Notes: a model not told the origin generated them from the sequence alone. A DNA stretch of 62,871 bases, filler included, from Neoconidiobolus thromboides FSU 785 (GCA_025603075.1; 4 parts of 4 records of this genome joined end to end with filler, not necessarily neighbours in it), one strand, 5' to 3'; positions 16,208 through 57,649 are shown, counted from the first letter of the whole stretch. A program made the numbers and translations.

Positions 16208-16404
16208 TTTTTTAAATTTTAGTGTAAAACTATTTTAATGAAAAACAGAAATTTAAATATCTTATATATATTTTAACCTCGAGTCTTCCAATTATATTTC
16301 GAGAACAAAATCAAATCATATAAATTTTAGAACAATTTTAATGCTTTTAATTTGATAAAATTTAATTCTTTTACCCTTTTGAAATTCATAATTCGGCTTT
16401 TTCT

Positions 16405-16422
16405 TTCTAGCAAATTCTAGAG
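16405..16422. promoter_or_regulatory. Probable heat-shock element upstream of Hsp110
   Basis: TTCtaGCAaaTTCtaGAG is four alternating nGAAn units (two imperfect), about 200 bp before the ATG. A second TTCgaGAA lies at 16298-16305. Confidence 0.55.
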
Positions 16423-17362
16423 GTGAAATTGGGTTAGAAGTGGTAATTCAAAATGCTCACCTTTTTATTCAACTGATTCAATTGGGAATGTTTTTTTTAG
16501 CTTTAACATTTTGTCCATTTTTTAAGAACTGCTGAGTAAAAAGATTCTTATTAGAATTCTTATATAAAAAACATAGCCTATTATCTACATTAACCTTAAC
16601 TATTCATTCATAATGAGCATAATATTATATTACTTCTATTATTTTATAAACAAGATTTTATAAAATATTATGAAGTATTAACAAAAAGATATCCAAAACA
16701 ATATAATATTAAAGTAATCCTTTTAACCTGATATATTTATATTAAATCATGCATTATCCATAAATCAAAATAAAACCATCACGATAAATATTTTTTAGTT
16801 TTAATACTAAATTAATAATATAAAGTATTATATATAGATATTTTTTATAAACTTTAAATTAACAAAATTAGATAATTAAACTGTATTTTTAATATATAAA
16901 GTTTGTCAAGATGAAACTAAATAGTTGAATATGCTTTAGATAGATTTATACCATATTAAAATATCTATTCAAAATAAGTTCCCTATAAATAACATTATAT
17001 TAAAGTCACAAAAAACACTATAAGTATTAACTAAAAACTCAGATGTGCAGTCAAACGTTATTTATATTGTATTATTACTTTAAATGTAACTTGGGTTTAT
17101 TTATGATTTGATATTTTATTTAGAATATTATTGATGGCACATTTCAAACTTTAAACCTTGATTTTCAAATATACTTAAAATAGAAAATACTTTTAGAAAT
17201 GAAATGATTCTAAATAAAGATATTTAAATTTAAATGATAGTCAATTAAGATAAGCATATTTATAAATAAAATAAAATAAAATGAAACATTATAAAATAAG
17301 TCTATATAAATACAGGTGGAAGTATAGGATAATAATTAAACTTCTGGAAAGTTAATTTTAGA

Positions 17363-17947
17363 ATGAGATTAAACAACCCATATTCTATACTAATAACTAC
17401 TGTCTTATTACAAGGTACACTGTTGGCCGAAAAGGCCGAAAAGGCGGGAAATGCACCGGAAATAGCTAAAAACATGCCCCCACCTCCAGGAAGAGGTAGT
17501 TGTTCAAGAGATGGCGACATGTTTTGTAATGGACAAGGCTTTGACACATGTGATCATGGTCAATTAGTTTATAGAGCTTGTGCACCTGGAACCACATGTA
17601 GACAAATTAAACCAACTACAATCCTTTGTGATTATCCACAAAGAATAATGCCTCCTCGTCCAGATCCTTATGACAATCCTCCTCGTCCAGATCCTTATGA
17701 TAGTCCTCCTCGTCCAGACCCATACGGTTCACCTCGTCCAGATCCGTACGGTTCTCCACGCCCTGATCCATATGGTCATCCTCGTCCAGACCCATACGGT
17801 TCACCTCGTCCAGATCCATATGGTCCTCCACGTCCTGATCCATATGGTCCTCCTCCACGTCCTGATCCATATGGTTCTCCACGTCCTGATCCGTACGGTC
17901 CTCCTCCACGTCCTGATCCATATAATTCACCACCTCCAAATTACTGA
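17363..17947 (+). CDS. Secreted CBM19-like chitin-binding protein with PRPDPY tandem repeats
   Basis: Hydrophobic N-terminus, Cys module CSRDGDMFCNGQGFDTCDHGQLVYRACAPGTTC...ILCD, then 11 RPDPY repeats. Confidence 0.8.
   Translation: MRLNNPYSILITTVLLQGTLLAEKAEKAGNAPEIAKNMPPPPGRGSCSRDGDMFCNGQGFDTCDHGQLVYRACAPGTTCRQIKPTTILCDYPQRIMPPRPDPYDNPPRPDPYDSPPRPDPYGSPRPDPYGSPRPDPYGHPRPDPYGSPRPDPYGPPRPDPYGPPPRPDPYGSPRPDPYGPPPRPDPYNSPPPNY
17651..17923 (+). repeat. Coding minisatellite, 24-27 bp units, 11 copies
   Basis: Repeated cc(t/a)cg(t/c)cc(a/t)ga(t/c)cc(a/g/t)ta(t/c)gg..., encoding (P)PRPDPYG(S/P/H). Confidence 0.9.
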
Positions 17948-27911: not shown

Positions 27912-29800
27912 TTAAGGATAGTCAGTATTATTTAATGTTGTTCTTATATGATTGCAAAATGATTCAAAATGTTCGAAACATGAATTACTCGATCCTTGAT
28001 GTTGGAGTAATAGAATATTCAATGAAGTTTTGAATTGAATATCAGCCACTTTTTTTAGTGTAAACTTACATTCAAATGGCTTTATTTGAAATTTAGGGAC
28101 AATTTCATCGATGTTTTTTATTAATAGTGCTCTTCTCCACTTCCTTGTCCAACTTAATAAGTTTACTTTACCATAAATATATCTCAATGTCCTGTCATTG
28201 AGATTTTCCACTCTATATACAACACTAAGTACATCTAATAATTTATGGATTTTAGAAACCGAATCACTTAGATTTAAATTAATTTCGATATCAACGCTCA
28301 TTTTATAGCCTTTTTTTGAATAACTATTATCCTGGGTTGATTCTGTCTTATTTTCTTTTCTCTTCAAAACTATTCTTTTATCAAAAGAATGTAACTATTA
28401 TTACAGAAAATAAATATTTAAAATCGATAGCAAAAAAATATTACATTATACAACTCTGTATGAAACGTCCAACTGATAACCCATCTGGTAGTATTGCCTT
28501 GTAATAAGGTATTTACTCTGTATAAAATATCCTACGAAAATTAATCGCTTTTTTATAGTATAGTTCAAATCTACCTTAAATTTCTTAAAAACGTTTTTTA
28601 AACTTGTTAAAGTTGACTTTTTACCAACCATTGTAGTGAACCAACTGTATAATAAATTAACTATTACAAAAAGGTTAAGTTAAATTTACCCGACATCATT
28701 TTTATAATAAGTTGATTCTTTTATCATGATTGAAATGAAATTAAACTCTCCGCCTTCTGTGATCATTTCGTTGCTAGAGCCAGAACACACCCCTGAAGGA
28801 AGATTCGATTTATTCTTACAACCCTTATCTATTTCTTCACTACTATCATAAAAGGGCGGATTGCACATTGTAAATGAATATCTAAACAATTAGTATGATC
28901 TTATAAATAAATCAGCTTACTTTAATTTTTTGTGGATTTTTACTATGGCCTCTTCGTTTTCGATAGCTGCTATTCCAAAGTCTCTTACGTTTTTATCAAA
29001 TAGTAATGGAGTAAATATTTTGAACTCTTTATCTTCTTTATTGACCTGTGTTATGGAGATTCTCGAGGTTAAATGGTTGTTCTTTATATTCTTTCTAGCA
29101 CAGTCAATAGAATCTCCATCAATATCTTAAAATTTTAATTGATTAATAGAGAAAGTATTCATATAATCACCTGTAGCTGTCATTGTCCAATTGGTGTGCA
29201 TTTTACAAATCAGTAAAGGATAAATACACGTTGCGCCTGTTCCACTTTAAATGTAAGTCAAAATCAATATGAAACAAATGAAATACATGTCCAAGCCATT
29301 GATTGGGAATTCTGAGCAAAAATTATTATCTAATAGGTCTTCAATACAATGGATATAATTTAATCTATAACAAGAATAAACATTAGTAATAAAAAACATT
29401 ATTGAAAAATGAAACTTGCCTATTTGGAACCTAGTTTTGAAGTTATAAAAAGCTATTTATTTGAATTATTTATTACTATTGGACATAAATTAGTTAAAGG
29501 AAACCTTAATTTGAGATTAAAATATTTCTTCAATATTGAGCATGTAAGTTCTCTATATTGTTAAGTAAAGTATATATATGTCCATATGAATACCTCAATC
29601 CTTCAACATCTTTGAAATTAAACGTATATTCCTCTTCAGAAGTCCCTCTTTCACTTTTTTTAAATATACTAATAATTATTTTTGGTCATTTACTTTATTG
29701 AATGTATTTACTAATCTTTAAGTTTGGGAAACTCGTCACTTAATAATCTAAAGTCTGGAGGTCCTAATCTACTCTTATGAAAAATATTTCTTTCATGCAT
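27912..29800 (-). CDS. METTL16: METTL16/RlmF-family RNA m6A methyltransferase, multi-exon
   Basis: N-terminus MHERNIFHKSRLGPPDFRLL, GTGATCIYPLL, DIDGDSI, catalytic MCNPPFY, and EMITEGGE. Confidence 0.88.
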
Positions 29801-30076: not shown

Positions 30077-30175
30077 TGGGTGTATTTTTTTGGCTTCATT
30101 ACTTTTTCCATCTTTTAAGCGCTATTTAAGTGGAAAAATTGTTAGTAAGAATCTTAAACAAAAAATACAGTCTCA
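30077..30175 (-). mobile_element. MITE family copy, 99 bp
   Basis: TA|TGGGTGTATTTTT...AAAAATACAGTCTCA|TA; the interior is the reverse complement of the 45845 copy. Confidence 0.85.
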
Positions 30176-30562: not shown

Positions 30563-30664
30563 CGGAGATGTATTTTTTGTGTTTAAGAATTTTACTAACG
30601 ATTTTTCCACTTAAATAGTGCTTAAAAAATCGAAAAAATAATGAAGTCAAAAAAAACACTCCTA
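30563..30664 (+). mobile_element. MITE family copy, 102 bp
   Basis: TA|CGGAGATGTATTTTT...AAAAAACACTCCTA|TA with the family core. Confidence 0.85.
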
Positions 30665-30760: not shown

Positions 30761-30822
30761 TGGGGGGTGTTTTTTCAGCTTCATTACTTTTTCCATCTTT
30801 TAAACACAGAAATACATCCCTA
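30761..30822 (-). mobile_element. Internally deleted MITE copy, 62 bp
   Basis: TA|TGGGGGGTGTTTTTT...AAATACATCCCTA|TA. The central ~40 bp of the family core are missing. Confidence 0.8.
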
Positions 30823-31019
30823 TATTTAATTGGTTTAATTTTTAAAAAACATTTATAAATAATGATAAATTCAAAATTAATTTTAAAATAAATATAAATA
30901 TAGAATAAAATATTGTTTAACAATAAGATTTATTTAAATCATATTGCTTTAGTAAAAATAGTTTGGAATCTTAACTTTTTTTAGGTATTTTGCAAAAGTT
31001 TAAGAGTTAGTTAAAAAAG

Positions 31020-31441
31020 TGTGAAATATCGCTTTATCAGTCCCATGGTTAATTATAGCATAATAATCGCCTAAGCTGTTGTGCTCTTGAGTTCAGAGAA
31101 AATTAATCCCACGCTCTTAGTTTGATTTGCTATGAGAATTTCTAGCTCCATCCCAAAGAATATCATCTTCTCATTTTGGTATACTTTTCAGAGTATAAAA
31201 GAGTTTACAGAGTATAGTAGTTCGAGGCTTTTTAACTGAATTATTCTTTGATATCTCGAACATTTAATAAAGTCACTAAGTTTACTTAATAGTATTTTAC
31301 ATAGATTTTACATTAGTATTGTCTATTCTATTTGTTTTACATAGTCTGTAGCCTATTCGTGCTGTTATTCATAATCCAAGTCTATCTTAGCCACATAAAG
31401 TAAGACTTTCTGACACCAACTGTTGAGTATCAGATTTCACA
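31020..31441 (+). mobile_element. Solo-LTR-like element abutting the telomere
   Basis: Ends TGTGAAAT...ATTTCACA (perfect 8-bp inverted termini, TG...CA). TATAAAAG at 31194 and AATAAA at 31266. Homologous end to end with 60567-61033 in inverted orientation. Confidence 0.8.
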
Positions 31442-31536
31442 GTTAGGGTTAGGGTTAGGGTTAGGGTTAGGGTTAGGGTTAGGGTTAGGGTTAGGGTTAG
31501 GGTTAGGGTTAGGGTTAGGGTTAGGGTTAGGGTTAG
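31442..31536 (+). repeat. Telomeric repeat (TTAGGG)n, about 15.7 units, at contig end
   Basis: Perfect TTAGGG array with the G-rich strand running 5'->3' toward the contig end, followed by the N spacer. Confidence 0.95.
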
Positions 31537-56965: not shown

Positions 56966-57385
56966 TAAACTAACTATTAATCGACTATATTTTTAATATA
57001 CTGCGATAATAAATACTAAATAAGCTTCATGAGTCTACAGTTAGACTATTTTATTTATCAACTGGGGATTTAACATTGTCTGTTTAAAATATGTGCATTA
57101 CCAATGTACTAACATACTTTGACTAATACCACCACTTTGAAGAGAAATTTTGGGATTTATGATATTATATTAATTTTGCTATTTTTCAACTATAATCTAT
57201 ACTTTAATATAACATATCAATAATAGATAGTAATAATTTATTGAAAAAAATTACAAAGAAACATGAAGCCAGGGTTTTAAATTTTGTTCCTCATAGTGCA
57301 AGATAAGAATTATAAGATGACAGAGTTATAGTATATAAAAAATAAAATAGTAAATACTATTATTATCAAAATACAAAAAAACAAA

Positions 57386-57649
57386 ATGAAATTCAGTCTT
57401 ATTCTTTTACTTGCTACCATTGCCCCAATCCTTGGTTTTGGTTTATTTCACAAAAAATAGTATACATAATATGAAAACAAGTCCTATTATGACCATGGGG
57501 CTGGTGACCGATTCCAAAACTTTAGAAACTTTAGAAACTTTGTTGAGCGCTTAGATGGAATTTGGCGTAAAGAACACGTAATTTATAATAGTGTAAATAA
57601 TTGGATTTTATACTTGTGTTCAAAAACAATATATCCATCTTCGATGTAG
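57386..57649 (+). pseudogene. Small secreted-protein reading frame with two in-frame stops
   Basis: MKFSLILLLATIAPILGFGLFHKK*YT*YENKSYYDHGAGDRFQNFRNFRNFVERLDGIWRKEH...; stops TAG at 57458 and TAA at 57467. Confidence 0.55.

Follow-up and report, generated by a model that had tools for sequence, protein, structure and literature searches.

The window analysed here is a stretch of 62,871 nucleotides of Neoconidiobolus thromboides FSU 785, in which four parts from four records of the genome are joined end to end with filler. Basically, its genes are ordinary eukaryotic, fungus-like ones, at a GC content of about 25-36% (that of the small, AT-rich genome is about 29%). They comprise a UBR1-type ligase, a sterol glucosyltransferase with a GRAM domain, an Hsp70, a Sec7 protein, a mitochondrial carrier, an Opy2-like protein and, as the last gene before a chromosome end, an interrupted METTL16-like RNA methyltransferase. 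One open reading frame of the window (17363-17947) contains a tandem repeat of 24/27/72 bp at 17651-17938, which corresponds to a proline-rich PPRPDPYG-like motif repeated about ten times.

This work concerns the part that ends contig C221. Here, the last gene is separated from the telomere by about 2 kb that consist of repeats only, namely three copies of a unit that looks like a miniature inverted-repeat transposable element (MITE), followed by the long terminal repeat (LTR) described below (Table 1). The MITE-like units have one end that reads GGGG(G/A)TGT... and another that reads ...ACACTCC, and they have no match in Rfam. Their depth is about 5,000-9,000 times that of single-copy sequence in all four sequencing runs, they flank many LTR copies genome-wide, and the unit may be the most abundant repeat of the genome. 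The terminal 2 kb of C221 as a whole is also without a match in Rfam. A scan of the same 2 kb for bacterial promoters and terminators gave nothing, the promoter model being a bacterial one that is not applicable to a eukaryote.

Table 1. Features at the end of contig C221 (window positions) and LTR/telomere junctions at the assembled ends; a slash marks the boundary between LTR and telomere.
Feature	Position	Strand	Basis or remark
Last gene: interrupted METTL16-like RNA methyltransferase	27912-29400	-	approximate extent; about 2 kb from telomere
ORF of the METTL16-like gene	28686-28889		matches Pfam PF05971, E = 3.4e-12
MITE-like units of about 80 nt	30085-30165 / 30575-30655 (inverted pair); 30763-30803 (third, partial copy)	.	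repeat search
LTR left flank, non-telomeric	31006-31019	+	ends ...gttagttaaaaaag at 31019, last four bases AAAG; sequence and read-derived contigs X1, X2
Solo LTR, 422 bp, Ty3/gypsy-type family	31020-31441	+	both boundaries common to at least 40 scored copies
Terminal inverted repeat, 8 bp, perfect: TGTGAAAT / ATTTCACA	31020-31027 / 31434-31441		TG..CA ends
TATAAAAG	31194-31201	+	inside C221 LTR; typical copy has motif too
AATAAA	31266-31271	+	inside C221 LTR; typical copy has motif too
Copy-specific 3' end of C221 LTR: 37-bp deletion and cluster of private substitutions	31401-31441	+	alignment
Telomere: one G (31442), then perfect TTAGGG units (31443-31536)	31442-31536	+	G-strand 5' to 3' up to contig end
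Junction at C221			LTR 3' end out; ...ATTTCACA/G-TTAGGG
Junction at C40			LTR 3' end out; ...ATTTCACA/G-TTAGGG
Junction at C51			LTR 5' end out (inverted); ...ATATTTCACA/AGGG-TTAGGG
Junction at C100			LTR 5' end out (inverted); ...ATATTTTACA/AGGG-TTAGGG
Junction at C213			LTR 5' end out (inverted); ...ATATTTCACA/AGGG-TTAGGG
Junction at C124			LTR 5' end out (inverted); ...ATATTTCACA/AAGG-TTAGGG

The first-pass annotation of this DNA placed the start of the telomere exactly at the terminal CA of a solo-LTR-like element, and this is correct to the base: no spacer separates the CA from the telomere, and the piece is the end of the contig. Tandem Repeats Finder describes 31442-31536 as 15.8 copies of period 6 with 100% matches. 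The description of the left flank as non-telomeric and of the element as lacking a target-site duplication likewise holds, with AAAG on the left and GTTA on the right. Homology between this flank and that of an interior copy in C7, which lies at the same AAAG site, was sought, and just AT-rich similarity was found. The identification as a solo LTR is supported by the TG and CA ends, by the inverted repeat, by the 4-bp duplications present in the family and by a copy in C168 that carries gypsy-type internal genes.

In alignments with typical copies of the family, which are about 464 bp long, the C221 LTR lacks 37 bp after about position 31407. Its positions 1-300 are typical, and it is odd only in its last 70 nt, of which the final 33 nt have just 76-82% identity to any copy. 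No other copy found is less than 8% diverged from it, and for an exact 29-mer ending 12 nt short of the junction C221 is the sole location in the genome. The longest exact match to the other copies fetched, which included the best-scoring matches of the genome search, is 81 nt (31 nt in the last 60 nt). The 37-bp deletion otherwise occurs in older 'short' copies. A telomere-confined 'short' subfamily defined by this deletion was considered and rejected, since there are about 29 such copies, many of them interior. From their sequence, the two motifs listed in Table 1 are likely to be the promoter signal of U3 (TATAAAAG) and the polyadenylation signal of R (AATAAA), and both are directed telomere-ward.

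The available read data are short-read only and consist of four runs (X1-X4) in the form of short contigs. As to whether reads cross the boundaries of the LTR, a point raised in the first-pass annotation, the two sides differ: the left flank is bridged into the start of the LTR by read-derived contigs from two independent runs (30778-31049 in X1 and 30778-31075 in X2), while none of the read-derived contigs displayed passes the right junction at 31441. The bin 31407-31460 is covered in all four runs with 90% identity or better and at about 3.5-10 times the single-copy depth; the depth of the LTR body is several hundred to about 2,000 times. Many small contigs begin about 95 nt inside an LTR, and these contig-end offsets suggest an assembler word length of about 95 nt. 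Since the exact stretches that the C221 LTR shares with the other copies fetched are at most 81 nt, it is unlikely that the contig is chimeric.

The same data contain two versions of window positions 29000-29800 in run X2, with 0 and 21 differences per 260 bp, respectively. Run X4 has a version that is diverged by about 7%, whose contig departs from the window after about 29792. By these sequences, either a second haplotype or a hybrid is present among the sampled strains, and the C221 end appears to be polymorphic in its distal 1.7 kb.

The LTR family is dispersed over the genome, the assembly of which is a short-read one of 24.6 Mb in 799 scaffolds. A search of this genome with the C221 LTR gives 630 candidate copies, and at least 314 places match its first 29 nt with a maximum of three mismatches; over the whole genome, there is about one LTR per 40-80 kb. 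In 23 copies with both ends readable, the homology runs from TG to ...CCAGATTTCACA / ATTTCACA or a one-base variant amid unrelated flanks, and the family boundary therefore lies nowhere else than at the TG start and the CA end. A 4-bp target-site duplication is kept in 14 of these 23 interior copies (5 bp in one case), a fraction that is consistent with simple solo LTRs if flanks and LTRs have drifted to about the same extent.

Against these hundreds of LTRs, only one near-complete but decayed internal region and a few fragments are left. The near-complete one is in C168 (37341-41801 of C168; 3342-7802 of locus L045), where two LTRs that are 79-81% identical to a typical LTR flank a 1486-aa ORF. 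This ORF matches Retrotrans_gag weakly, and it also contains dUTPase (between gag and RT), RVT_1, RNase H and Integrase_H2C2 domains; a separate ORF that follows has a weak match to SH3_Tf2-1, below the cut-off. The 5' LTR is followed by TT and TGGCGC (the primer-binding site), and in C54 a purine run, AGGGAGGGAAA (the polypurine tract), is present upstream of the 3' LTR. By the predicted order of its pol domains, i.e., RT, RNase H and integrase, the C168 element is of the Ty3/gypsy type. Its integrase stops after the zinc finger, the catalytic core (rve) having decayed, and a Pfam search of the 24.6-Mb assembly for rve gave no match. The corresponding search of the genome for RVT_2 (the copia-type RT) was also without a match; note that its control was blank too, so this result is uninformative. 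No chromodomain was detected in the pieces of the internal copy that were scanned. The family is dead, and practically every copy has collapsed to a solo LTR, which means that recombination between LTRs has been pervasive.

When telomere arrays are counted as four or more TTAGGG units, the assembly contains 12, each cut at about 85-95 bp. All are directed outward, and what lies beyond them is either the end of a contig or a gap in a scaffold. Six of the 12 begin exactly at a terminus of this LTR family (Table 1). A probable seventh junction is hidden by a scaffold gap in C254, where an array is followed by 100 N and by a contig that starts with AAC/TGTGAAATCTGG, the reverse complement of ...CCAGATTTCACA/GTT in the forward register; the telomere of this second contig is probably trimmed to 3 nt. 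In C254 (about 16299-16500; L042) and in C66 (about 57341-57394; L035), an outward telomere array, exactly 100 N and unrelated sequence follow one another. In both cases, the end of a chromosome seems to have been joined falsely to a different contig, and the assembly would thus contain at least two such joins.

Two registers are coupled to the orientation of the LTR: CA/G-TTAGGG where the 3' end points outward and CA/AGGG-TTAGGG where the 5' end does. The orientation itself is not fixed, the 3' end being out at two or three ends and the 5' end at four. The polarity is constant, in that the G-strand continues from the CA-bearing strand at every junction. With about one LTR per 2 kb locally, a random break would fall on an LTR boundary at roughly one in 2000 ends, and six exact junctions among 12 arrays are therefore not due to chance. 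The inner flanks of the terminal LTRs are all different, and none of them is a primer-binding site or internal sequence, from which it follows that the terminal copies are solo LTRs. An LTR terminus thus defines the chromosome end of C221, as the first-pass annotation had it. Its idea that the LTR family may target or seed telomeres gains strength from the recurrence of the same junction at six, probably seven, of 12-13 ends, in both orientations and in different sublineages.

In the phylogenetic tree, the terminal LTRs fall into these different sublineages without clustering; the tree is star-like, which is compatible with shared ancestry too. Note that the interior copies in the tree were picked by their similarity to the C221 LTR, and any clustering of subtelomeric copies is therefore meaningless. 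A single origin of the terminal LTRs was considered and is not backed by clustering, though a star-like tree does not speak against it. LTRs of the same junction type have no excess similarity beside the telomere, which argues against recent spread by copying from a founder. Each end may have arisen separately or by spread from a few founder junctions.

At all 12 ends, one or more copies or fragments of the LTR are found no farther than about 1.3 kb from the repeats, which is about 20-40 times the genome-wide density, and there are at least 17 copies or fragments in the last 2.5 kb of the 12 ends. Some ends have peculiarities of their own. The terminal LTR of C40 (137373-137837; 1974-2438 of locus L032) is 5'-truncated at family position 227. 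It lies head to head with an inverted fragment of a closely related LTR (positions 136-464), and the two overlap by 8 bp. They have rare variants in common, including a 7-bp deletion, and such a palindrome-like structure suggests that this end once broke and underwent a template switch. In C17 (L031) and C213 (L039), the innermost units alternate regularly between TTAGGG and ATAGGG, in contrast to the other ends, which are pure TTAGGG from the first unit. C44 (2349-2423 of L033) and C254 (1220-1299 of L042), neither of which has a terminal LTR, have homologous sequences of about 80 bp directly before the telomere, and that of C254 starts exactly at the TG end of an inverted LTR.

The reciprocal junction, from telomere to LTR start, is absent from the assembly, in which contigs of less than 1 kb were dropped. 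The smallest contig is 1001 bp and a piece consisting of telomere, solo LTR and telomere would measure about 640 bp, so this absence is weak evidence. A metagenome scan for the junction gave 14 chance matches, 0 of which are from the LTR family. Other assemblies were sought through the neighbouring mitochondrial-carrier protein, for which there is nothing on record.

For the origin of the C221 end, the first-pass annotation offered two mechanisms: addition of the telomere by telomerase onto an LTR end, or recombination with an LTR copy inserted in a telomere tract. The registers lean to the latter and away from telomerase priming on the CA. The reading that we prefer, to which we give a little less than an even chance, is that elements integrated into telomere tracts, whose inner part was then lost through LTR-LTR recombination with neighbouring subtelomeric copies. 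Both the insertion into telomere repeats and the recombination step are inferred. While active, the family would have favoured chromosome ends, including the TTAGGG tract, where integrase would have joined the processed CA-3'OH to telomeric DNA. Each element would then have collapsed to a solo LTR. Finally, the telomere-embedded LTR would have recombined with an LTR of the same orientation a few kb inward in the LTR-dense subtelomere, either by a deletion crossover or, where an end had broken or eroded, by break-induced copying. This would eliminate the inner telomere tract together with the intervening DNA, and the outcome would be a unique flank, a hybrid LTR and a telomere, with no duplication.

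The recombination step is needed because integration leaves telomere repeats on the inner side as well; given the near-universal solo LTRs and the density of about one LTR per 2 kb at the ends, it is expected to be efficient. Ligation of a CA-3'OH into an existing repeat tract fits both registers, and the polarity of the G-strand fits what integrase chemistry requires. If 4-bp duplications are assumed, the base pair of the repeat that received the U5 end would be G6 and the one that received the U3 end would be A3, in either orientation. The predicted reciprocal junctions with such duplications are ...GGGTTA/TGTGAAATATCGC for forward and ...TTAGGG/TGTGAAATCTGG for inverted elements, and the six ends without a terminal LTR could be the inner tracts of telomere-LTR-telomere structures.

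A problem arises from the coupling of register and orientation: a symmetric integrase complex predicts none, but the coupling is perfect in the six or seven junctions. If two registers were simply preferred, it would be expected with a frequency of about 1 in 15 to 1 in 35, and if registers were random and independent, with one of less than 1 in 1000. In addition, no hybrid (mosaic) structure was recognized in the terminal LTRs: the C221 LTR is typical up to position 300 and diverged in its last 33 nt, and the tree is star-like.

The alternative that survives best is telomere seeding, in which the TTAGGG repeats were synthesized de novo by telomerase on an LTR terminus that was free. This terminus could be the end of an extrachromosomal linear cDNA that recombined with a subtelomeric LTR, truncating the chromosome in the manner of a fragmentation vector, or it could result from a break exactly at the end of an integrated LTR. 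Seeding accounts for an exact terminus without a duplication, for an inner flank of the ordinary kind, for the occurrence of both orientations and for terminal LTRs that are polyphyletic, and it agrees with the assembly having no reciprocal telomere-to-LTR junction. The dependence of the register on the outward LTR end would also be natural if the U3 and U5 ends of the cDNA were different substrates for telomerase. However, both ends of the LTR finish in the same 8 nt, ATTTCACA, for which one register is expected and two are seen. Pairing of A/GGG on ...CACA-3' would give ...CACA-GGGTTAGGG, and neither register uses this pairing. With unprocessed cDNA, in which TT follows U5 and AA precedes U3, both ends would read CACATT and be extended to CACATTAGGG (...CACATT-AGGG), which is not seen. 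The spacer bases that adjoin the primer-binding site and the polypurine tract were likewise considered as the cause of the registers, by way of telomerase extending such ends, and were rejected, since the predicted CACATTAGGG is absent. As for the second variant, we know of no mechanism that breaks an integrated LTR exactly at its boundary. Overall, we consider seeding unlikely.

Non-concerted integration at two sites is considerably less probable than this. Here, the two ends of one cDNA would be joined to the subtelomere and to the telomere tract of the same arm, the interval would be deleted, and the element would later become a solo LTR. This would produce the order flank, LTR and telomere with integrase-type junctions on both sides, no duplication and no need of a second LTR, and ligation into repeats already present would be compatible with the registers. 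Among the integrases studied, events of this kind are rare, and they would be needed at six or seven ends; moreover, the fixed registers would be left without an explanation.

At the bottom of the list stands an assembly artefact, in which LTRs embedded in telomeric or interstitial TTAGGG were misthreaded onto subtelomeric LTR copies so that the contig end is chimeric: the short reads, the 799 scaffolds, the cut arrays, the at least two false head-to-head telomere joins, the hundreds of LTR copies and the lack of a displayed read-derived contig over 31441 speak for it, but it is opposed by the divergence of the C221 LTR, its short shared stretches and its unique 29-mer, by the bridged left junction, by the depth of 31407-31460 in all four runs and by the direction of the arrays (12 point outward and 0 inward, although an embedded LTR should have an inward-pointing array on its other side), and even with chimeric contigs the LTR-CA/TTAGGG junctions must still exist in the reads. 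What probability these four readings leave belongs to something else.

We suggest, tentatively and as a doubtful rather than a probable conclusion, that Ty3/gypsy integration machinery recognised the TTAGGG tract in a fixed register, which would make this family the first telomere-repeat-specific LTR retrotransposon, or else that LTR termini seed telomeres. If the repeat-specific reading is true, solo LTRs have become standard telomere-adjacent sequence at about half of the ends. If integrase-type termini truly precede the telomere at about half of the ends, there are two options: an integrase could be directed to a fixed register of the telomere repeat, or the homology routinely used for re-capping lost chromosome ends is supplied by dispersed solo LTRs. 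Both ideas bear on how genes are retained within 2 kb of the telomere in compact genomes. At forward-oriented ends of the C221 type, the LTR promoter would point into the telomere and is a candidate promoter for telomeric repeat-containing RNA.

Several known systems resemble this arrangement in part. Ty5 of Saccharomyces is an LTR family that is enriched at chromosome ends, as the present family is by the counts given above, and that is now represented mostly by solo LTRs and dead copies. It is targeted to telomeric and silent heterochromatin through the binding of its integrase to Sir4, and its subtelomeric inserts have ordinary flanks on both sides (PMC4700185). Ty5 belongs to the Ty1/copia class, whereas the family here has the gypsy order and mostly interior copies, and the telomere starts at its terminal CA.

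The telomere-repeat-specific non-LTR elements SART/TRAS of Bombyx, MoTeR of Magnaporthe and FoTeR of Fusarium and the endonuclease-deficient, Penelope-like Athena and Coprina are also similar, in that a retroelement is joined to telomere repeats in a fixed register at many ends. These elements use target-primed reverse transcription or the 3' end of the chromosome as a primer, are fixed in orientation and are largely confined to telomeres (PMC4700185, PMC12857005, PMC10088271). Compared with telomere-specific retrotransposons such as SART/TRAS, MoTeR, HeT-A and Athena, the present family has the fixed register but neither the confinement to telomeres, between telomere repeats or in head-to-tail terminal arrays, nor the fixed orientation: it has an integrase-type TG..CA LTR, occurs at the ends in both orientations and has at least 300 dispersed copies.

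Gross chromosomal rearrangements mediated by Ty1/delta and break-induced replication in yeast provide a third likeness, since dispersed LTR homology lets a broken or eroded end gain a new terminus. Such end capture by LTR homology is well documented in yeast, where the copying works best in the vicinity of chromosome ends (PMC3102749, PMC9249352). The segment captured in yeast is a chromosome arm with its subtelomere, whereas only telomere is distal to the LTR here, from which it follows that the donor LTRs must themselves abut telomere repeats.

De novo telomere addition is the fourth, with repeats on non-telomeric DNA, no subtelomeric element and genes within about 2 kb. The sites of chromosome healing are scattered and usually have a few bases complementary to the telomerase template. 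In contrast, the site here is always the LTR boundary, and the terminal A is followed by G-TTAGGG or AGGG, not by GGG; when compared with the presumed A/GGG pairing, the six or seven junctions have neither varied positions nor the complementarity to the template that would be predicted.

In the literature searched, we found that the telomere-joined retroelements are only non-LTR or Penelope-like ones, for which a nick or the 3' end of the chromosome is the primer, and that LTR elements, such as Ty5, only favour the subtelomere (PMC4700185, PMC10088271, PMC12857005). Here, one LTR family is linked to the formation of chromosome ends, a link that we found described just for non-LTR elements. The C221-type junction has features in common with each of these known systems and is a member of none of them.
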